Positions 40,758 through 52,620 of a DNA stretch of 64,000 nucleotides are shown piece by piece. Both the position numbers and the translations under genes were made by a program. Position 1 is the stretch's first letter. Each line of letters begins with the position of its first letter. Origin of the DNA: Rebecca billardiae RCC1528 (taxonomy: Eukaryota; Protista; Haptophyta); assembly GCA_965240325.2 (NCBI GenBank), contig OZ251225.1, positions 2,604,001 through 2,668,000 of the forward strand. Direction: 5' to 3'. The notes below the pieces were generated by a model, which was not told the origin of the DNA, did no database searches, and saw only the letters and a program-made list of their open reading frames with translations.

Positions 40758-41809
40758 TTACCACGCCCGGATGGCATCCATGGTGTGGGGCCGCCACCAG
40801 ACGGCTCTCCATGCGTCTGTCTCAGCTCGCGTGGCCGAGAAGTCAAGCAGCCGCCGTTGCGCCCGTTCGTCAGAACGCTGTGAATGCATCCCAGAGCGAG
40901 CGCTTTGCGAAGCATTTCGGCGATCATGATCGTTCGCCTCGTACGTCGCCGAGTTCGAGTGCGGAAACGCCCGCCTGCACGCGGGCCAGTCGGCCTGGGA
41001 CACGCCCAGGAAGGCACACAGCCGCGCTGACAGCTCGAGCGGCTCCTCGCGCAGGAGGTTCACCTCCAGGAGCTGGCTCTCCGCGTGCTGCTGGCGGAAG
41101 AAGGTACGCACGCGCGTGTTGTGCTCCTGCATGCCCTTGATGGCAGTCTCGCGTTTCAGCGGGTGCGAGTTCAGCAGATTCTCGTACTGCTTCTTCTTCT
41201 GTGTGTTCTGCACGTGCACATGGTTGACCCAGTTGTCAACCGAGCTCCACCAAGAGGCTGGCTCGCGGACTGTCAGCACAAAGCGCGTGGTCGGTCGCAG
41301 CCGGAGCATCGCCTCGATCGCGCGCATGTCACAGCACCAGGGGTAGTCCTCGAAGCTGAAGCAACCCTCAGACGCGTTGACCACCTGATGCATGGTCAAG
41401 CCCTTGCCACCAATCTTGGCCGGGACGGTCGGATAAAGCTTGGGCTTGAAGCCGACCCGCCGCAAGAAGCTGCCGAGGGAGCTCGTGCCCTGCGCCGCCG
41501 CGGGACGGGCGGTTCGGGGTCGGGAGGAGGATGGCACACCCCAGGCTTAGCCCACCCAGGTGCAGTGCCATACCCCAGTGGGACCACCCCGGCTCGCGAG
41601 TTGCCTGTGTCACGCGCAAGAGGACGCTCGCGCACCGTCTTCTTCCAGCCTACACCAACCACCGCGTATGGCGGCGATTGCGAGCCAGCGTGGGACCTTG
41701 CGCACTTGAAAAGGGACAGTGCGTGGCTCTCGCTCGTCCGTTCATGGGGCCCCACGTGGCGTGTCACAGCCGCGATCGCCGACACGACGGCGACTGACAG
41801 CGCCGCCAT
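40758..41809 (-). CDS. P-loop sulfotransferase-family protein (Sulfotransfer_4-like); exons 41809-41636, 41489-40758
   Basis: Splicing rebuilds the PAPS-binding loop VVGVGWKKT/GTSSL. Also FEDYPW, RFVLTVREPASWWSS, HNTRVR..LLEVNL and LCAFLG..FPHSN. Hydrophobic N-terminus. Confidence 0.83.
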
Positions 41810-42565: not shown

Positions 42566-43364
42566 CTAGCCTTGCACCTTGGCCGCCTGTGTGCGCATCC
42601 GCTTGCTCAGAGGCTTCCCGCTGCGCTTGCGCGCAGATTCGATCACGCACTTCGGACAGATGTACTTCTTGATGTCCTTAGCCTCGTGCTCGGTGATGTC
42701 GACGCACCAGCCGTAGTACCACTTGTCTGCGCCCGCGCGCGAGGTGTGCGCAGTGGCGGCCAAGGGGCGGGGGCAGCCGTCACGAGCTGTGCGCGCATCG
42801 CATGGCACACGGGCCACGATGCTCTGCGCGCGCGTACCGCAGTTGTCACAGCCAATCATGAAGCCCCCGATGTTCTCCGCCGCGGGCCAGCCCATCCCAT
42901 CCTCCTTCCCGTCCGCCTCCTTCGGATTCTCCTCCTCCTTCTCCTCCCGCTGTGCAGGCGCATCCCGCTTCTCGTCGCCGGCTGGCCGCTCAGCGGCCAG
43001 CTCGAGATCGTCATCAAGCCATCGTATCCGCATGGGGACCCACTTGTGGTCCTCCAAGAGCCAGAGATTTCTGCTGTCGAGGATGCCTACGTCCTCCATG
43101 CCGTCCTCGTACACCACGCGATGGCGCAAGCCCGCGTATGTCTGCGTCGCCCAATGCGCCGCGATGCGTGAGTGCGTTGCGCGCGTGAGAGGTCCGCACC
43201 CGGGCGTGCACGTGAGGCGCGCAGGCGCGAGTTGGGCGTGCGCGCGCCTTGACGACAGCTTCAAACCACTCCTCGTACTCGGGCCAGAAGACCTCCAGCC
43301 GGCACCCCACCGCGCGCCGGCCGAGGTCCGTCGTGGGCTGTGTGCTCGAGGCCGCGCCTGACAT
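42566..43364 (-). CDS. Small chromatin-reader-like protein with a Tudor-like domain and a degenerate PHD finger; exons 43364-43248, 43141-42838, 42726-42566
   Basis: VGCRLEVFWPEYEEWFEAVVK/TY...HRVVYEDG is Tudor-like. FMIGCDNC/DKWYYGWC..KYICPKC is the C-terminal part of a PHD. The basic tail could be an NLS. Confidence 0.8.
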
Positions 43365-43584
43365 GCTTACGGAACGCAAAGGCCACCGCCCGGGCCGGAC
43401 GACGTTTTTATTGGGTTCGCAAACCACGATAGAATCGAGATGCAATCCCGCTTGCGCAATATTCTCCCAGCCAAGGCTCCCCTTTTATTATTGTTGCTGC
43501 TTGGCCGCGACCCCAGCGTGGAGGAGGCCAGAAGCTCGCCCCGCGGGCTCCCAAGCCGCGGCCTCCGCCGCGCGCCAGGCACAG

Positions 43585-46328
43585 ATGGAGCCGGGCGTGC
43601 CGACGCGCCGGCTCCCGCGGCCGGAGGGCCTGCGCATCTCGACGCGCCTGGCTCACTGCCTGATCATCACGACCAACATCGCGCAGCTGCTGCTGATCAT
43701 CCTCTTCCTCTCGCTCATGCTGATCCGCCTCGACGGCGTCGACGTGGCGTGGGCGGCCGTCTTCGCGCCGCTGTGGATCTCAGACATGATCACGCTGAGC
43801 ACGGGCGCGCACGAGGTCGCGCGCCTCGTCCGCCCCATGCCCTCGGAGCCCATCCGGCGCAACCTGCTCATCATGCAGGTGAACCGGCTGAAGGGCACGC
43901 TCTGCACGGCCGTCTTCAAGGTGCTCGTCGTGCTCCGGCTGTCGGACCCGGAGGACACGACGCCCGCGCGGGTGATCATCATCCCGTTCTACGTCTGCGC
44001 CGCCGGCCGCCTCTTCCTGCACACGCTCAAGGAGAAGGTGCCCTCGTCCGAGCCGTCGAGCCCGCCCAAGCGGCCGGGCGCGCCACTCAACCCGCTGCAC
44101 ATCTTCATCCTGCTGATCGCGTGCCGGATAGACGGGCTGAACGACCTGTCGTGGGCGGCGACGTTCTGGCCGATGTGGATCGTCTTCGGCATGCTCGGCC
44201 TCACGCTCCTCGGCGCGATCTTCCTCGGCGTCGGTATCTGCGTCACGGGCGAGCCGCGCGAGAACGGGCAGCGCGCGCTCTTTGCCATCTGCTTTGGCGT
44301 GCTCCTCACGATCACGACGTGCGGCTTCGCGTTCCAGCTCAACCTGACGAACCGGCTGGACGGGGACGAGAGCATCAGCAACGCCGCGATCATCACGCCG
44401 CTGATCTGCGCGTACGGCGGGCTGCTGCTCTTCTACCTCGCCTTCACGTTCGTGCTGCCGCGGATCGTCGAGTACGACATCGCCGCGATGACGGAGCGCA
44501 TCGTCGAGGAGGAGGACCAGCGCGACGGCGTGCTGGAGGCGGTGTCGCAGCAGCTCGCGCCGCCGTTCCTCGTGCAGACGTCTTCGACGCTCTTCCAGCG
44601 CGTCAACTCGACGATGATGTCGGCGTTCCTCACGCCGGGGTCGGCGGCGGACAGGCGCGAGAGCGGCGCGGCGGCGGAGGACGGCGCTGAGGCGGCAAGC
44701 CCAGCCTCGGGCGGCGCGCCCGCACCCGCGCCCGCGCCCGCGCCCACGCCCGCCGCGCAGGCGCACGCGCCCGAAGCGCGCGGCGACGGCGGGGACGGCG
44801 GGCTGAACGCGATGGAGGAGGGCTGGGCCGACGGCCCCGGCCCCGTCCTCACCGAGTTCGAGGAGCTGCAGACGGAGCTGAGCGATTGGCTGCGCAATCA
44901 GCAGCCACCGCACAACTCGAGCCAGCTGCGCGCCGAGGCCTTTATGGCCGACTCGCCGTGGGGCATCGAGGAGGCGGGGGAGGCGCTGGACGAGGCCTCG
45001 CGCAGCGACGGCGACGCGGAGGCGGGCGCGGACGGCACGCCCGCAGACAGCAGCAACCGCCGCGCCGACGTGGTCGACGAGCACGTCGATGACGCAGCCG
45101 ACGCTGCCGGCGATGGCGGTGCGGACGTCGAGCGAGAGCTCGAGCGTGAGCGCGCCGCAGCGCCGGCCGCCGCGCGCGCGGATGCGCCCGCGGGCGCCGT
45201 GCCGGCGGAGAGCGAGGGGTCGAGCGACGGGGCGGCCGAGCCACCCGCGTCCGCGCCGGAGGACGGCGCGGTCTCGCGATCGCCGGCCGCCGCGCCCTCG
45301 GACGACGCCGCCGCGCCCAGCCCTGCGAGCGAGCCCGCCGCGCAGGCGGACGGCGCGGCGCCGGCGGCCGCGGACGCGGCGGCCCGGCCGCCGGGCAGCG
45401 CGCTGACCACGCTCGTTCCCGTCCCCCCCATCGCGGCGGGGAGCACGGCGCTGAGCCCGAGCGTGCGCGGCGCCGGCCCGGTGCACGTCCCTCCCGACAT
45501 CGTGCAGAAGCTCCACCGCTTCGTCGCCCTCCGGCAGCAGATTGTGTCGCGCGCCGTCGCGACCGCGCTCGTCGACCTGCAGGACGTGGCCGAGCCCAGC
45601 AGGGCAGCCGCCGCGCCCGTGGACGAGACCAAGACGGACGCCGCGCCGGCGGCCGCCGCGCCCAGCATCGCGTCGCGCCTCTCGCTGCCCGGCGCGAGCA
45701 GGCGGCGCGCGCAGACCCGCGCGACGAGCACGCTCGCCGAGCGCCGCTGCTCCGCGGCGGTGACGGCAACGGCGACGGCCGCGGCGTCGCGCGACAGCGC
45801 GGGCGCGGCCAAGCCGGTGGCGGCGGCGGGCGAGAAGGCCGCGGCTGCCGCGCCGGCCGCAGACGTGGGCACCGACGGCGATGCCGTCGCTGCGGATGGC
45901 GCGGATGACGAGGACGTCTCCGAGATCATGTGCTGGATCTGCTGCGAGGGCCCTCGCGACGCGGTGCGTGCGCCTGCCCGCGCCACGCTCGCGCCGCGCC
46001 CTCCGCGCGCGATCCATGGCACGCGCGTGTGACTTGACTGACGGCTCGCGCGCGGCGCGCGCCTTCGTCCTTCGGCGCGCAGGTCTTCCTGGAGTGCGGT
46101 CACGGCGGTGTGTGCCTCGCCTGCGCGAAGCGGTGCTGGAAGAAGCGCGGACGGCTGTGCCCCATGTGCCGACAGGGCATCGAGCAGGTCGTGCACATCG
46201 CCCCGCAGGCGGCGGACTACCAAGGCGCACGCATTGTCCGCGTGCGCGAGGCCGACCCGGCGGCAATCGAGTCGCTCGAAAAGCTGCAGGCGGCGACTAC
46301 CGCGAGCCCACTGGCGGGGCGCGCCTGA
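43585..46328 (+). CDS. Multi-pass membrane protein (TMEM185-like N-terminus) with a C-terminal C3HC4 RING; exons 43585-45963, 46083-46328
   Basis: Repeated RLDG..WAAVFAPLW and RIDG..WAATFWPMW segments. Spliced CWICCEGPRDA/VFLECGHGGVCLAC..CPMCRQ. Confidence 0.87.
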
Positions 46329-47068
46329 TGATCCGGACAGATGGCGTGTAGGGCGAGCGCACAGCATTGGCAGTCTCATCCGACATCATCGGTAATAAAT
46401 AACTGTATGGTCCGGTAGTATTCAATATCGCCCGGGTAATAATCGCAAATAATCGCGCGGACTAATCGCCCGGCGGGTCGCGCCGGTCGCGCGGGACGAC
46501 CGCCGGGCCGAAGGCCGAATTATGAAATTATCAGCAGCGGTACGCGGTGCTGACCGAGTGACGGCGCCGTGGCGCCGACCAGACCGCGCGGTCCTGACAG
46601 TGTCGATCGTCAGTGACTAGCTTTTGTTTTATAATACAACTTCAGCCCCGGACCGGCCTCGGGCTCGGACCCCGTCGTCTCGGACCGGAGGCGGAGGCCC
46701 ACCAGTGGCCGGTCTCCGACACCGTTGCTCCGACGGGCCCCCGCCGACGGGGCCTCACGGATTGCCTGATGAAATATCGGGCCTGGGCCTGGCTGTTCGA
46801 CGGCGGCCCGCGCGGCCCGAGCATGGCTCTCTCGTCGAGTCTCAGGCTGCGCGCCTTGCGTGGGTGGAGCCCGCAGTGGGTGACTGCGGACCGTGACGAA
46901 GTCGGCTGACGAGCGTTGACGGCTCCGCCGCCAAGCCGCAAGCGGCGTGGCAGCGCCGAGACCGTGCATGGCGGTGACAAGGTGGGCACCAGACGGCGCC
47001 AGTGACGCGCGGGTTGCGCTCAGGTGGGCAGGTGAACCTCATTGAGACGAGGCCAGACTGCACGATGC

Positions 47069-47314
47069 TTAGTAGCCGTAGTCGTGCTGGATCGCCTGCT
47101 CGTCGGCGAGCGCGGCTTGCTCCATCCCCTGGAACTGCGACGGGTCGATGGCGTTCGTCATGTGGGGCGACACGTGCACCATGTTGATGGTGTTTTCGAT
47201 GCTGCCAATGTCGAGAGACATGAGCTTCATTGTGATCCCGGGGAAGTCCACCGTGTTGAGCGCCTCCTGGAGGCCATCGACCTCGATGCCGGCCGCGAAG
47301 TCGGGAACGCTCAT
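47069..47314 (-). CDS. 81-aa acidic microprotein, paralogue A, unknown family
   Basis: About 90% identical in protein to the product of 47862-48119. Similarity ends at the stop codon and includes many synonymous differences. Confidence 0.8.
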   Translation of the reverse strand: MSVPDFAAGIEVDGLQEALNTVDFPGITMKLMSLDIGSIENTINMVHVSPHMTNAIDPSQFQGMEQAALADEQAIQHDYGY

Positions 47315-47861
47315 CTTGTCGGGTTGTGCGCGAGATTCGGCTACACGCTGGTGTACGATAGGCTGTCCCGTGAATTTTGGCGGCGGATGCACGGGGATCT
47401 GTATGAAGACCTTGACCGGACCCCTAAATGGAGAGCTACAACTGGCTGCTCATTCGGCTCATCACTTGAGGGAAATGGGTCACGAAGACATAACGCAAGA
47501 ATTCGTCATTGGGATAGTCTGTTACGTCTGAAACCCCCTTGGTCTGAAGACCATGAATCCCGATCGCTTTTGATCCGCCGACGACGGCCATCATAATATC
47601 CCACAGTATTCAATCTTGGGATGATCTGGAATACATAGCTCTGTGCCTGTCTCTGTCGTTCTCTGATACTTCCCCCATACCTCTTTTACCTTTGAGTGAG
47701 TGGCTCTTGACTGAGCTGATTATGACAGGAACCTTCCAGACTCGGCCCGGCCTGTGAATCGACAGGATCCTTTTGATCGGAGGAGGAAGGAGTGTGCCAC
47801 CGCGGTCAAGAATCTCGCGCACCCTTCCCGTCTTCCGTTCACGCCCCTCAACACCGGCGAG

Positions 47862-48119
47862 ATGAGCTTCGAGAAGGGCATGCCCGACTTCGCCGCTGGT
47901 ATCCAGGTCGATGGCCTCCAGGATGCGCTCAACACGGTCGACTTCCCCGGGATCACAATGAAGCTCATGTCTCTCGACATTGGCAGCATCGAGAACACGA
48001 TCAACACGGTGCACGTGTCGCCGCACATGATGGGCAACATCGACCCGTCGCAGTTCCAGGGGATGGGGCAGGCCGCGCTCGCCGACGAGCAGGCGATCCA
48101 GCACGACTTCGGCTACTAG
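47862..48119 (+). CDS. 85-aa acidic microprotein, paralogue B, unknown family
   Basis: MSFEKGMPDFAAGIQVDGLQDALNTVDFPGITMKLMSLDIGSIENT...QHDFGY, an inverted paralogue of 47069-47314. Confidence 0.8.
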   Translation: MSFEKGMPDFAAGIQVDGLQDALNTVDFPGITMKLMSLDIGSIENTINTVHVSPHMMGNIDPSQFQGMGQAALADEQAIQHDFGY

Positions 48120-48933
48120 AGCTTACCTCTGCGAGGCTCGCCCGCCTGACTTGGACTCAGGCCCGCGGACTGTTAGCAGAGTTCCGGTGGTCTCACTTTA
48201 TGCCGACGCGGTGCGGCCCGCTGTAGTCAACGGGCCGACCCGTCGTCGGAAGCGTCAGAGTTTGGTGTCAGTCATCGCCAGCAGCGTTGATCGAGCCCTG
48301 TGAATCCACCAGGCGCGTCATGTGCGACGTATAGCGACCGAATACGAGCTTCGCTTGTGAAAATCACTGCTCACGTCAAGTCATCCGCCGGAACTCACTT
48401 ACTCTTAATTACTATCATAATGTGACCGTATAAGTCCGCATCCGCGCGGGCCTCCCGCGCCGGGTATGGCGCGGAGCGCCAAGGGCGAGTGGCATCACGC
48501 GGAGTACTCCGAGGGCTACCGTCTGGCGTAGACGTGACGCGCGCGCCACCGCGGTGGTCGCGGTGCCACGCGTCGTCAGCCGTCGTCTCGAAGTAGTCGT
48601 CGTGCGCAGCGCCCCCGCGGGCGCGTCGGCCCCCGGGCGCACGCCAGTGCGCCACTGCGCGCGCGGGCGCTGAGCATCTTGGTCTGGCCACGCAGGTAGC
48701 GCATGCCCAGCTCGCGCCGCATGGTGCCAAGCAGCGCGCGCTCGGCGGAATATGAGCCATGATGAGCCGATATGAGATTATTGCGGGTCAAGCCTCCCGA
48801 GGGCTGGCCAGGGAAACCGAGCGCTACGCAGCTCCCTGACGGCCACCAACGCGGAGCCCGCGAGGGCGCGTGACCGTCTGACACGAACAGCCCGGAGACA
48901 GCCGTGCGGTCAAGCCGTGCGTCGTCGGGGCGT

Positions 48934-51900
48934 TCACCGCTGCCACCGCATGTGCACCACACCGCCGACGCGGCCTTCCGCATCGGGCGGCTTGAAGTGG
49001 TAGACGCCGCGCACGAGGCGCGCATCCGCCGGGCTGTCCACCTTGAGCCCGGCCCCCGGGAGGTGCGCGCCCTCCTTGGCGACACGCAGGGCGTACGTGG
49101 TGAACGGCGCGCCGCCGCCCGCGGCCCGTGCCTCGGCGATCGGCGGCTCGAGCTCGACGCGCAGCCAGCGCGCGCGCAGGTCGAACGCGACCGCGCGGAT
49201 CCGTCCGGCCATCGCCTCGAGCTGCAGCCCGAGCGGCTGCACGTACACGCGCCGGCGCACGGAGTCTCGCGGCTCGGCGCGCACGACGGCGCTCGTCCGA
49301 TTCGGCGGCGCGATGTCGCAAAAGTAGCAGAGCCAGCCCGCGGTGGAGTGGCGCACGACGAACGCGCCCGCCTGCAGCGCGTGCCCAAAGAAGCCCAGCC
49401 CAAAGTCGCCCGAGTGCGGGTCGTGGTCGAGCACGAACGGCGAGGCGTGGAACATGAGCGACGGCGCGCCCCGCTCGTCGATGCTCGCGAGCGCGCCGCC
49501 GAGCGCGCCCGCCGCAATCTCGAGCAGCACGAGATTGGCCTCGTCCGGGGCGGCGCGGTACGCCTCGACGCACGGGATCATGTTCAGCCCCGCGCGGTAG
49601 TGCATCAGCCCGCGCTCGGTGCCGCGCGTGACGAACACCTTGCCGTTGTTCCCCAGGTCGCCGAGCGAGCGCGCGCCGCCGTGGTACGCCCACGTCGCGC
49701 TCGAGCGCATGAAGCTCAGGACTGCGTCCAGCGTGCGCGCCGCCGCCGCGTCGTGGCCGTAGTGCCGGAGCCAAACGTAGACCTCCTCCTGGCCTGTGGT
49801 GTCGAAGTTGAACTCCGAGCCGTACGGGAAGGCCAGCGTCGACCAGTGCTCGGCGCGGTGGCGCATGTTCCCGTCGAGCTCCTCCGCCCACGCCGCGATC
49901 GTCGCGTTCGCGCCGCCCTCGGCGCGCAGCGCGACGAGCAGCTCGCGAAAGACGGTCCCAACCATCAGGCCGACGCTCGGCCGGTGCACGCGGCGCGCGG
50001 TGAGGAACGCGTGCTCGAGGTACCACGCCCAGCCGTGCGCCGTGCGCACGCGGTCGTAGTACCGCGCCACCCGGTACAGCGCCCAGTACACCGCCGTCTG
50101 GTGCGGGTAGTTGAACGCGCGGTACGTAGCATTGGCCAGCTTCTCAGTCTGTGCGCGCGCGCGCGCGCGAGCGCGAGCGCGCAGGCGAGAGCGCGTGCGA
50201 GCGAGCGAGGTTGTGCGCAGCCGCGGAGGCGTGCGCGCGCGCGGGTTCGCGTGGCACCAGCGAGCGTGCGTGGCGTGAGGGCGCTCGAGCGCGGAGGCCG
50301 CGCGGGCTCGGGCGCGCACCATGCACCACACGGGCCCGCGGAGCGGCACCCGGCACTTGTTCTCCTCCGTGTAATCGTGCGGCCAGTGCGTCTGGTTGTA
50401 GTAGAAGAGAGTCATCCGGACTGCGTGGGTGTCCGGGTCCTGGAGGGATCGGAGCGGCGGGCGGGCGGTGTCGGGCTTGGTGCCGAGCAGCGTGCTGTCC
50501 ACGTACTCGTCGAGCCGCGCCACCTCCGACGCGACGGGCGCCACCGCCACCTTCATCGCCAGCCCGAGGTTCTGCGCCGCCCCCGCGTCGTCGCTCAGTC
50601 CGACGTTGTACGCCCGCGCGTCCTCGAGCACCCAGCGCTGCGCCTCGCGGTCGAACGGCATGACGGAGGCGCTGCGGCCGAACGGGTCCGGGTACGAGCG
50701 CGGCAGCCACGCGGTGTGCGCCCAGTGCGCGCCGAGCGCGTCGAGCTGCTCGGTGGACGGCGGCAGCACGCGGTAGTGCACGGCAAGCTCTGTGCCGTCC
50801 TCAAAGCGAACCGACACACGCGCGGCGCCGCGCGCGAGGCCGCGCACGGCGAGCCGCTGAGCGGCCGCGCCGACGCCGGGCGGCGCGGCGTGTGGCTCGC
50901 CGCCGAGCGCGACGGAGAGCACGCCGCCGGGTGCCACGTCGACCGCGACGATCGCCGAGCCCGGCGGCGGCCGCACGAACAGCGCGGCCGAGCGCATGTC
51001 CGTGCCAATCACGAATCCGGGCACGGCGTGCACCACGGGCTGGGCGAGCGCGGCCAGCGCTGCGTCGCGCGCGAGCCGTCGCGGCGCGGGCGGGCCAGGA
51101 GGCGGCTCGGCGGCGGCGGCGGCGGGTGGCGGCGTGGGCGGCGTGCTCCCCGGCGCGTCCGGCACGAGCATCAGCCGCAGCGCGAACGACGCCGCCTCGC
51201 CCGGCTGCAGCACAGCGGAGGTCGGCGGGTTCCAAGGCTTGGGCGGCGCGGCCGACAGGTACGTCTGCGCGCGGTGCAGCTCGGGCCATGGCGACCTTGG
51301 GTGGGGCCACACGCCGGTGCGCGCGAGGTTCTCCGCGAGCTCGAGCGCCGGCGCCTGCCGGTTCGTCGCCCACTCCGCCGCCCACGCCTCCGAGAGCACC
51401 GTCCACTCGCTGATCTGCGAGTTGTAAGCGCAGTCCTCGAGCAATGGCCGCCAGGCCTCGAGCCGCGTGGCGGCTGTGTGCGCGACCGCGAGCATCGACG
51501 CGTTGCCCACGGCGCGGATCCACTCGGCGTACCCGCGGTGCGAGCCGATGTGCGGGTCGACGAACGACACCGTCGGCGCGATCTGCTCCAGCTTCATCCC
51601 GCCCCAGTTGTCGTCCGCCGGCAGCGCGAAGCCAAGGCCGCCGATTCGCACGCCGGCGCGCGCGTCCGATGGCACAGACAGGTTGAGCCGCAGGACGAGG
51701 GCGCCGTCTCCCGGCCCGCCGTCGGGCGCGGCGCGCTCCCACGAGCGCACGGCGCGCAGCCCGAGCGCGAAGTCCGCGCGCCCGCGCAGCGGCGCGCGCA
51801 GGCATTCCGAGACGACGCGCTGCCGGCCGCGCATGCCGGCGCCGCCCGCGCCGCGCGCGCTCGGGTCCCTGTCATGCAGAGTGGCGCTCAGCGAGCCGTG

Positions 51901-52620
51901 CGGGCACTCGCCCGGGAAGGAGGGGTGCTCGTACTCGAGGAGTGGCGTCACGTCGTGAGCGGCGAGCACGCCCGGCGGGAGCGGCCCCGCCACGGGCGGC
52001 GCGTCCACCTCCGCCCCCGCGAGAGCGGTCGAGAACGTCGCCCACGCCGCGCGGTCGCGTTCTGCGACCGGCTGCACACGCAGCGTCACGTCACCGAGGT
52101 GATGGCAGCCCGGGTGGGAGCGCGTGGGCCGCTTGTAGCCCGAGAGCGGCGGGACCCACGAGAAGTTGTGCGGCGGCATCGGATCGGTCTCCAGCCGCAG
52201 CTGCTGCGCGGTGTGCGAGTGCAGCCGCAGCGCAAGGAGCAAACCACCGACGCTGAAGTTCCGATCGGCGACCTCGGGCGGGACGGGCTTGAGGTGCGCG
52301 CGCCACGTGCCATCCGCGTTGGCGTGGCGCGTGGCCTTGAAGTGGACGCGCAGGGACGCGTTCGTCCGCGCGCTCGCAGGCCCGACACGCGGCGGCAGCT
52401 TGTACGTGAAGCCCAGGCATCGTGGCATCACGTCGCACGCGCGCGCCGCGTCGCGTGCGTCGTCAAAGGTGCCCGTCGAAAGGTCTGCGCCGAGGCGCAG
52501 AGCGCCATGGAGCAGGAAATAATCGGCACCGCTCGAGGTCGCGCGTGCGGGCGTGGTGCTCACGGCCACTGCGAACGCCACCAGCGCCGCGTAGCGTCCG
52601 CCCGTCCGTCCACGAGCCAT
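48934..52620 (-). CDS. Secreted DUF5695-family protein (putative glycoside hydrolase); exons 52620-50320, 50148-48934
   Basis: Signal peptide. HHLGDVTLR, DPHIG..GY, DPFGRSASVM, GLSDDAGA, RAFNYPH, YGSEFNFDTTGQE, HYRAGLN and DPHSGDFGLGFFGH match DUF5695 as remembered. One in-frame 171-nt GT-AG intron. Confidence 0.8.
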   Translation of the reverse strand: MARGRTGGRYAALVAFAVAVSTTPARATSSGADYFLLHGALRLGADLSTGTFDDARDAARACDVMPRCLGFTYKLPPRVGPASARTNASLRVHFKATRHANADGTWRAHLKPVPPEVADRNFSVGGLLLALRLHSHTAQQLRLETDPMPPHNFSWVPPLSGYKRPTRSHPGCHHLGDVTLRVQPVAERDRAAWATFSTALAGAEVDAPPVAGPLPPGVLAAHDVTPLLEYEHPSFPGECPHGSLSATLHDRDPSARGAGGAGMRGRQRVVSECLRAPLRGRADFALGLRAVRSWERAAPDGGPGDGALVLRLNLSVPSDARAGVRIGGLGFALPADDNWGGMKLEQIAPTVSFVDPHIGSHRGYAEWIRAVGNASMLAVAHTAATRLEAWRPLLEDCAYNSQISEWTVLSEAWAAEWATNRQAPALELAENLARTGVWPHPRSPWPELHRAQTYLSAAPPKPWNPPTSAVLQPGEAASFALRLMLVPDAPGSTPPTPPPAAAAAEPPPGPPAPRRLARDAALAALAQPVVHAVPGFVIGTDMRSAALFVRPPPGSAIVAVDVAPGGVLSVALGGEPHAAPPGVGAAAQRLAVRGLARGAARVSVRFEDGTELAVHYRVLPPSTEQLDALGAHWAHTAWLPRSYPDPFGRSASVMPFDREAQRWVLEDARAYNVGLSDDAGAAQNLGLAMKVAVAPVASEVARLDEYVDSTLLGTKPDTARPPLRSLQDPDTHAVRMTLFYYNQTHWPHDYTEENKCRVPLRGPVWCMVRARARAASALERPHATHARWCHANPRARTPPRLRTTSLARTRSRLRARARARARAQTEKLANATYRAFNYPHQTAVYWALYRVARYYDRVRTAHGWAWYLEHAFLTARRVHRPSVGLMVGTVFRELLVALRAEGGANATIAAWAEELDGNMRHRAEHWSTLAFPYGSEFNFDTTGQEEVYVWLRHYGHDAAAARTLDAVLSFMRSSATWAYHGGARSLGDLGNNGKVFVTRGTERGLMHYRAGLNMIPCVEAYRAAPDEANLVLLEIAAGALGGALASIDERGAPSLMFHASPFVLDHDPHSGDFGLGFFGHALQAGAFVVRHSTAGWLCYFCDIAPPNRTSAVVRAEPRDSVRRRVYVQPLGLQLEAMAGRIRAVAFDLRARWLRVELEPPIAEARAAGGGAPFTTYALRVAKEGAHLPGAGLKVDSPADARLVRGVYHFKPPDAEGRVGGVVHMRWQR

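Follow-up and report, generated by a model that had tools for sequence, protein, structure and literature searches.

Two small genes lying head-to-head in this alga's genome, here called A and B, are very probably a real, duplicated and lineage-restricted pair of small-protein genes, probably expressed divergently from the spacer between them. Our full explanation makes A and B functional single-exon genes of an orphan family, duplicated head-to-head and transcribed in opposite directions, and we regard it as likely. The pair lies in the window, a 64,000-nt stretch corresponding to positions 2,604,001-2,668,000 of contig 7 in an assembly of 72 Mb and 41 contigs; all positions below, unless attributed to another contig, are those of the window.

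Gene A occupies 47069..47314 on the minus strand, with its ATG at 47314 and a TAA at 47069-47071, whereas gene B occupies 47862..48119 on the plus strand, with its ATG at 47862 and a TAG at 48117-48119. Both are single-exon coding sequences, of 81 and 85 codons plus stop, respectively. The spacer (47315..47861) measures 547 bp from ATG to ATG and represents the GC minimum of the neighbourhood (0.45-0.55), the surrounding DNA being eukaryotic with a GC content of ~0.68. The preliminary description of two intronless ORFs of 81 and 85 aa, inverted around a lower-GC spacer of 547 bp, was therefore accurate.

The two proteins are identical at 70 of 79 aligned residues, and over the 79 aligned codons there are 8 synonymous and 9 amino-acid differences. 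The preliminary count (8 and 8 over 78 codons) was right for the synonymous changes, but it had left out a V/M codon at the edge of the alignment. Four codons that follow the start in gene B and in the orthologue described below are missing from gene A. As previously noted, the stop codons differ (TAA in A, TAG in B) and the similarity ends there, with none left on the 3' side.

A Logan short-read contig (L003, i.e., ERR14847150_49050 from run ERR14847150) joins the start of B, the entire spacer and A, meaning that the head-to-head arrangement is not a fold-back artefact of assembly. This contig, which spans the full spacer, is probably genomic. It is also chimeric, running from A into the 3' flank of B and switching inside a tract that is identical in the two genes. 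An 81-aa hybrid protein in a public collection (P0001), which stems from this same chimeric contig of the same organism, was consequently rejected as an independent homologue. Exact-protein look-ups yielded no further contigs with A or B.

Several features attest to the coding status of the pair. The GC contents at the three codon positions are about 0.60/0.33/0.91 in both genes (0.605/0.333/0.914 in A; 0.588/0.341/0.918 in B), and they take these values in the coding frame only; the pattern was not found in the spacer or in the 3' flanks. The GC3 values also match those of host genes in the window (0.81-0.96). When A was compared with B by the Nei-Gojobori method, we obtained dN = 0.064, dS = 0.19 and omega = 0.33, a ratio not near 1. 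Eight synonymous codon changes were observed, vs 3.6 expected for 20 random differences (P 0.019), a modest test given that only 20 sites differ. About one-third of random sets of 20 differences would create a stop codon.

Searches of the 72-Mb genome with the proteins, a three-sequence profile, the DNA and a degenerate pattern covering the tail at the C-terminus and the stop codon put the copy number at two, namely A and B. When the genome was searched at the DNA level with positions 47000-48200 of the window, only the locus itself was recovered, and no other copy of either arm or of the spacer.

When 1.84 billion cluster representatives were scanned exhaustively with phmmer, a sole true relative emerged, an 86-aa protein (P0002) that aligns end-to-end with 45% identity (E 2e-16). 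Across about 15 billion public proteins, that makes one relative, of environmental origin. It is encoded on a eukaryotic JGI metagenome contig of 1,450 bp (L007, from sample 3300009451), and its gene has GC1/2/3 values of 0.52/0.34/0.95. A tblastx comparison of this contig with the window showed similarity from the ATG to the stop and no farther. The N-terminus of B is that of the orthologue (M-x-x-EKG-x-PD), and the last 11 residues of the orthologue, DEQAIQHDYGY, are identical to those of A; the shared N-terminus and the identical C-terminus together fix both ends of the coding sequence. When A and B are compared with the orthologue, omega is ~0.7 (with dS compressed by the extreme codon bias), on which ground we conclude that most of the protein is fast-evolving. 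A second, inverted copy of the orthologue was not found within the 1.45 kb of its contig.

Codon-position GC, an omega of 0.33, an orthologue from another species with matching start and stop positions, and the lack of a match to any known family or transposon lead us to conclude that A and B are real, intact protein-coding genes under purifying selection, and not chance ORFs or transposon ends. The proposal that they represent a paralogous coding pair of an undescribed family is upheld on the same grounds.

The search for relatives extended well beyond the orthologue. Pfam and NCBIfam gave no matches for A or B; PHROGs and PDB sequences, searched with single sequences and with a profile (the profile search came back empty), contained no credible relative; and the ESM Atlas, queried with B and with the orthologue, gave no usable match. 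The weak matches that did appear (PHROG 34530 at E 0.042, for A alone, and NTF2 at E 0.18) were not common to the orthologues. A match of both A and B to PHROG 963 (baseplate wedge; E 0.2) was rejected as chance, the orthologue failing to reproduce it. Word-index protein searches with B and with the environmental protein returned self-type matches only, and contigs of metagenomes, viruses and prokaryotic genomes, scanned with the alignment, revealed no relatives. A degenerate DNA pattern for the C-terminus, run against metagenomes, matched only proteins with an internal QAIQHDFGY, which by eye we take to be NuoE/HoxE-like, and these matches were judged to be chance. No match to the locus emerged from Rfam and tRNA scans, and we found no paper containing the tail motif, the metagenome identifier or the run accession.

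Eukaryotic algal genomes and transcriptomes were covered in these searches through predicted-protein collections, from which short genes are often missing. Within this scope the family comprises three sequences from two organisms, and no confident match to a known family or to a transposable-element fragment turned up in Pfam, NCBIfam, PHROGs, PDB, the ESM Atlas or the DNA search of the genome. Judged from these results, A and B are members of an undescribed, narrowly distributed protein family, yet one of a well-known type, in which a divergent duplicate pair encodes an orphan small protein.

In many respects the family resembles other orphan microproteins, as its members have 81-86 residues, homologues in two organisms only, a fast-evolving body, low structure confidence and no Pfam domain. 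Many orphans, however, come without evidence of selection, whereas A and B have an orthologue, a strong codon bias like that of the host and a tail of 11 invariant residues, so they are no de novo ORFs whose coding status is in doubt. The pair offers a clean case of a very narrowly distributed small protein that is demonstrably under selection and invisible to all family libraries, and genes this small are easily missed when algal genomes are annotated. No process is tied to A and B, and for the present they count as a well-validated orphan gene, not as a new system. The invariant tail and the compact, presumably divergent promoter provide two simple experimental handles.

The A and B proteins are of ~9 kDa, with a pI of ~4.1 and a neutral GRAVY score. 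As previously described, they have no Cys, Trp or Arg and just 1-2 Lys, and they end in HDYGY (A) or HDFGY (B). The orthologue has one Arg; like A and B, it has no Cys or Trp, and in all three proteins the Met count is 6-7 per ~85 residues. Direct reading of the sequences showed neither a hydrophobic nor a basic leader at the N-terminus.

Starting from the EKG motif, the sequences can be written as four rows of 12 residues, in identical register in both species, with the consensus x-G/S-h-x-x-x-h-x-S/T-h-D/N-h. A fifth, degenerate row follows, and then a conserved C-terminal segment. The protein therefore appears to consist of four 12-residue repeats and an invariant C-terminal tail, although the internal repeat is only weakly significant in each sequence by self-alignment (P 0.03-0.3). 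Hydrophobicity varies with a period of 3 residues, not 3.6 (P 0.01-0.05). An AlphaFold2 model built from the three-sequence alignment showed five short helices, but with a pLDDT of 54 and a pTM of 0.18 it was uninformative. The segments conserved among the three proteins are QDALN, ENTI, DPS and, above all, the C-terminal tail.

A plausible course of events can be sketched from these features. A and B would most likely be transcribed outward from the 547-bp low-GC spacer, and they would probably be co-expressed, either as a doubled dose of one product or as two slightly different isoforms. The product would be a cytosolic protein of ~9 kDa with no targeting peptide. It would begin with a short N-terminal cap, continue with the four 12-residue repeats in tandem and finish with a C-terminal segment whose end is DEQAIQHD(Y/F)GY. 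The variable repeat body might then serve as a small scaffold presenting the invariant tail, acidic and aromatic at its end, to a partner protein into which it docks; the small protein would accordingly be an adaptor or a regulator, not an enzyme. We propose this scaffold-and-docking mechanism tentatively, because an invariant, acidic and aromatic-ended tail is carried on a fast-evolving repeat body, and we consider it possible rather than likely. Acidic C-terminal tails that dock into partners are known from the tip of bacterial SSB and from the ribosomal P-stalk, and here too the acidic, aromatic-ended free C-terminus is the best-conserved part. A and B have no sequence relationship to those proteins, so the comparison is a functional analogy and not a family assignment.

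Other roles can be imagined for the same protein; among those raised in the preliminary description, a heterodimeric system, a stress protein, a structural subunit and a peptide precursor are guesses. Another, close to its example of a stress or metal-binding protein, is that of a metal-binding protein or of a buffer against oxidative stress, acting through His and Met. The 6-7 Met residues, the acidic character and the lack of Cys and Trp in all three proteins would suit such a role, as would the HxxxHM and MxxM-like clusters of A and B. In the orthologue, however, the positions of these His/Met clusters are occupied by N, G, F, T, R and S, and the tail residue H81 is the one conserved His among the three of B. 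Together with the absence of matches to metal-binding families, these replacements weaken the idea and make it improbable.

We also consider it quite improbable that A and B encode the precursor of a modified or cleaved peptide, with DEQAIQHD(Y/F)GY as the core and the variable body as the leader. Conservation is indeed strongest at the very C-terminal end, in contrast to a rapidly diverging body, and a small protein with a Tyr-Gly-Tyr end recalls known modified peptides such as mycofactocin, which carry a C-terminal Gly-x-Tyr. On the other hand, there is no signal peptide, the last-but-one aromatic of the tail, at the third-last position, varies (Y in A, F in B), and no evident gene for a modifying enzyme adjoins the pair, the neighbours being a Tmemb_185A/RING gene and a DUF5695 gene. 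To our knowledge, such a modified-peptide precursor has no precedent in eukaryotic algae. If the tail were nevertheless the core of a modified peptide, the pair would represent a peptide-precursor system in a red-plastid alga.

The reading of A and B as complete single-exon genes depends on where the coding sequences begin. Read upstream past the ATG, both ORFs remain open (to 107 and 121 aa, counted from a GTG), an AG stands before both ATGs, and the frame of the orthologue is likewise open for 107 codons upstream of its own ATG. Taken alone, these facts could mean that the two ORFs are the terminal exons of larger spliced genes. However, the upstream extensions of A, B and the orthologue are dissimilar, with similarity beginning at the ATG, and the 547 bp between the two genes leave no room for upstream exons of both, so we hold the terminal-exon alternative to be very improbable.

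On the orthologue's contig, by our reading of the sequence, a putative ORF on the opposite strand lies upstream of the gene and ends in a GTAAGT splice donor. In a check of synteny, this upstream neighbour exon had no match in the present genome. Some 235 nt past the stop codon of the orthologue, the GC content drops abruptly from ~60% to 25% (L007:1261-1450).

The spacer between A and B presumably comprises a shared divergent promoter and both 5' UTRs, as the layout would have it. It contains two copies of the 13-mer GAATCTCGCGCAC: in front of A, at 47326..47338 on the minus strand, 12-24 nt before the start codon, and in front of B, at 47810..47822 on the plus strand, 40-52 nt before the start codon. 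This 13-mer is the sole similarity left between A and B outside the coding sequences (P 0.003 against dinucleotide shuffles). A 12-mer, GCCTGTGAATCG, lies at 47750..47761 on the plus strand, ~110 nt upstream of B, and is a candidate cis-element: it recurs twice upstream of the orthologue, at -46 and -75, within a 29-bp tandem repeat (P 0.007 against shuffles, for a motif that was noticed post hoc). The orthologue's contig carries GTGAATCG four times. Genome-wide, GCCTGTGAATCG has 4 sites vs 2 for a control, i.e., it is not enriched. The co-regulation of A and B envisaged in the preliminary description is suggested by the shared spacer and the short shared upstream motifs, and we would not word it more strongly.

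A few minor observations concern the same motifs. The tandem duplication of 29 bp (GAATCCCGCGCCTGTGAATCGCGTGAATC) lies just upstream of the orthologue gene, at L007:680-750. A second copy of CCTGTGAATC is found at 48297-48306 on the plus strand, ~180 nt downstream of the stop codon of B; the whole 64-kb window holds two copies, vs 0.11 expected. As for GAATCTCGCGCAC, we rejected it as a general promoter motif, its 19-fold genome-wide excess stemming from two repeat families. At least 10 copies on different contigs (L010, L012, L017, L018, L020-L024 and L026; e.g., G000:C1:4512241-4513253) have surroundings that are identical over the 173 nt inspected, which suggests a dispersed repeat or a transposon family of recent origin. 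The second family bearing GAATCTCGCGCAC consists of three similar copies (L011, L015 and L016).

Divergent pairs with a shared bidirectional promoter are well known among histone genes, as in H2A-H2B and H3-H4. A and B are like such pairs in being small, intronless and head-to-head over a few hundred bp of lower-GC DNA, with short motifs on both sides. Unlike histones, they are acidic and match no family, and their bidirectional promoter is a predicted one; moreover, the head-to-head pairing was not seen within the 1.45 kb available of the single orthologous locus. A more ambitious proposal would combine promoter and tail: A and B would then found a new eukaryotic family in which DEQAIQHD(Y/F)GY is the working part (acting either as a docking peptide that controls a partner specific to the lineage or as a modified peptide's core), served by a dedicated bidirectional promoter with a conserved GTGAATCG-type element. 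We regard this combination as rather doubtful.

The head-to-head layout also makes the locus an inverted repeat, which a repeat finder resolved into arms of 247 nt that are 91% complementary and separated by a loop of 555 nt. The left arm (47070..47316) equals the coding sequence of A and the right arm (47872..48118) that of B from codon 4 on; such a repeat far exceeds chance. The least probable alternative, and one that is largely refuted by the sequence data, is that this repeat is non-coding (a hairpin-RNA locus of the siRNA or proto-miRNA type, or else a MITE-like element present once, its terminal inverted repeats being the 247-bp arms) and that its ORFs arose by chance: the complementarity of the arms, the TA that bounds the repeat on both sides, as TA flanks Tc1/mariner insertions, and the abundance of long chance ORFs in this genome would fit, but the bounding TAs simply open the stop codons TAA and TAG, a GC3 of 0.91 against a GC2 of 0.33 is a coding signature, synonymous changes between A and B are in excess, the orthologous protein is conserved, begins and ends at the matching points and has no inverted partner on its contig, and divergent transcription would give two same-sense mRNAs, unable to pair. 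The arms and spacer occur at this single locus and have no other copies in the genome, and this removes the transposon reading.

Hairpin RNA loci born of inverted duplication reportedly fit a proto-miRNA model put forward by Allen and co-workers in 2004. A and B are like such loci in constituting an inverted gene duplicate with ~90% complementarity between the arms, around a loop several hundred nt long. However, both of their arms keep intact, selected ORFs, the genome contains no separate parent gene, and the two genes are divergent, so that normal transcripts would not contain both arms. The likeness to Stowaway-like MITEs and Tc1-mariner derivatives resides in the inverted arms flanked by TA; unlike MITEs, A and B form a single locus in 72 Mb, have coding arms and carry the TA within their stop codons.

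Returning to A and B as a duplicated gene pair, their distance from each other is far smaller than their distance from the environmental orthologue (dN 0.06 vs 0.45). Their history is most simply explained by an inverted tandem duplication in the lineage of this alga, after it split from the lineage of the orthologue. The central tract of ~50 identical nt on which the preliminary description had remarked is real, the longest identical run measuring 53 nt. Gene conversion, which this tract had been taken to suggest, is not statistically supported: 10% of random placements of 20 differences reach a run of that length (P 0.10), and the third-position differences between A and B are unclustered (P 0.70). 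A GC3 above 0.9 implies strong constraint on synonymous sites, and pS is just 0.42 even against the 45%-identical orthologue. With synonymous sites so constrained, even a duplication so ancient that its freely evolving flanks have decayed could show a dS of 0.19. The constraint exerted by codon bias would hence be sufficient to explain how conserved coding sequences lie within unalignable flanks, without gene conversion.

We found no functional link between the pair and the neighbouring genes (Tmemb_185A/RING, DUF5695 and sulfotransferase). The sulfotransferase is represented by a Sulfotransfer_4 ORF (E 1e-11) at 40758-41537 on the minus strand, in a lower-GC stretch ~6 kb from the pair. On the other side, at 48934-52620 on the minus strand and convergent with B, lies an uninterrupted ORF of 1,228 aa with a DUF5695 domain (E 1.5e-154). 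Upstream of A, and convergent with it, the interval 43249-46328 on the plus strand contains a long ORF that combines a transmembrane domain of the Tmemb_185A type (Fragile-X-F-like) with a tail very rich in Ala and Pro. A RING motif begins at the end of this Tmemb_185A ORF, and the remainder of what may be a RING finger is found in a separate ORF at 46110-46328 (Pfam zf-C3HC4_3, E 0.0012; 19 bits, below the 27-bit cutoff); the two ORFs may thus be separated by a short intron or by a frameshift.
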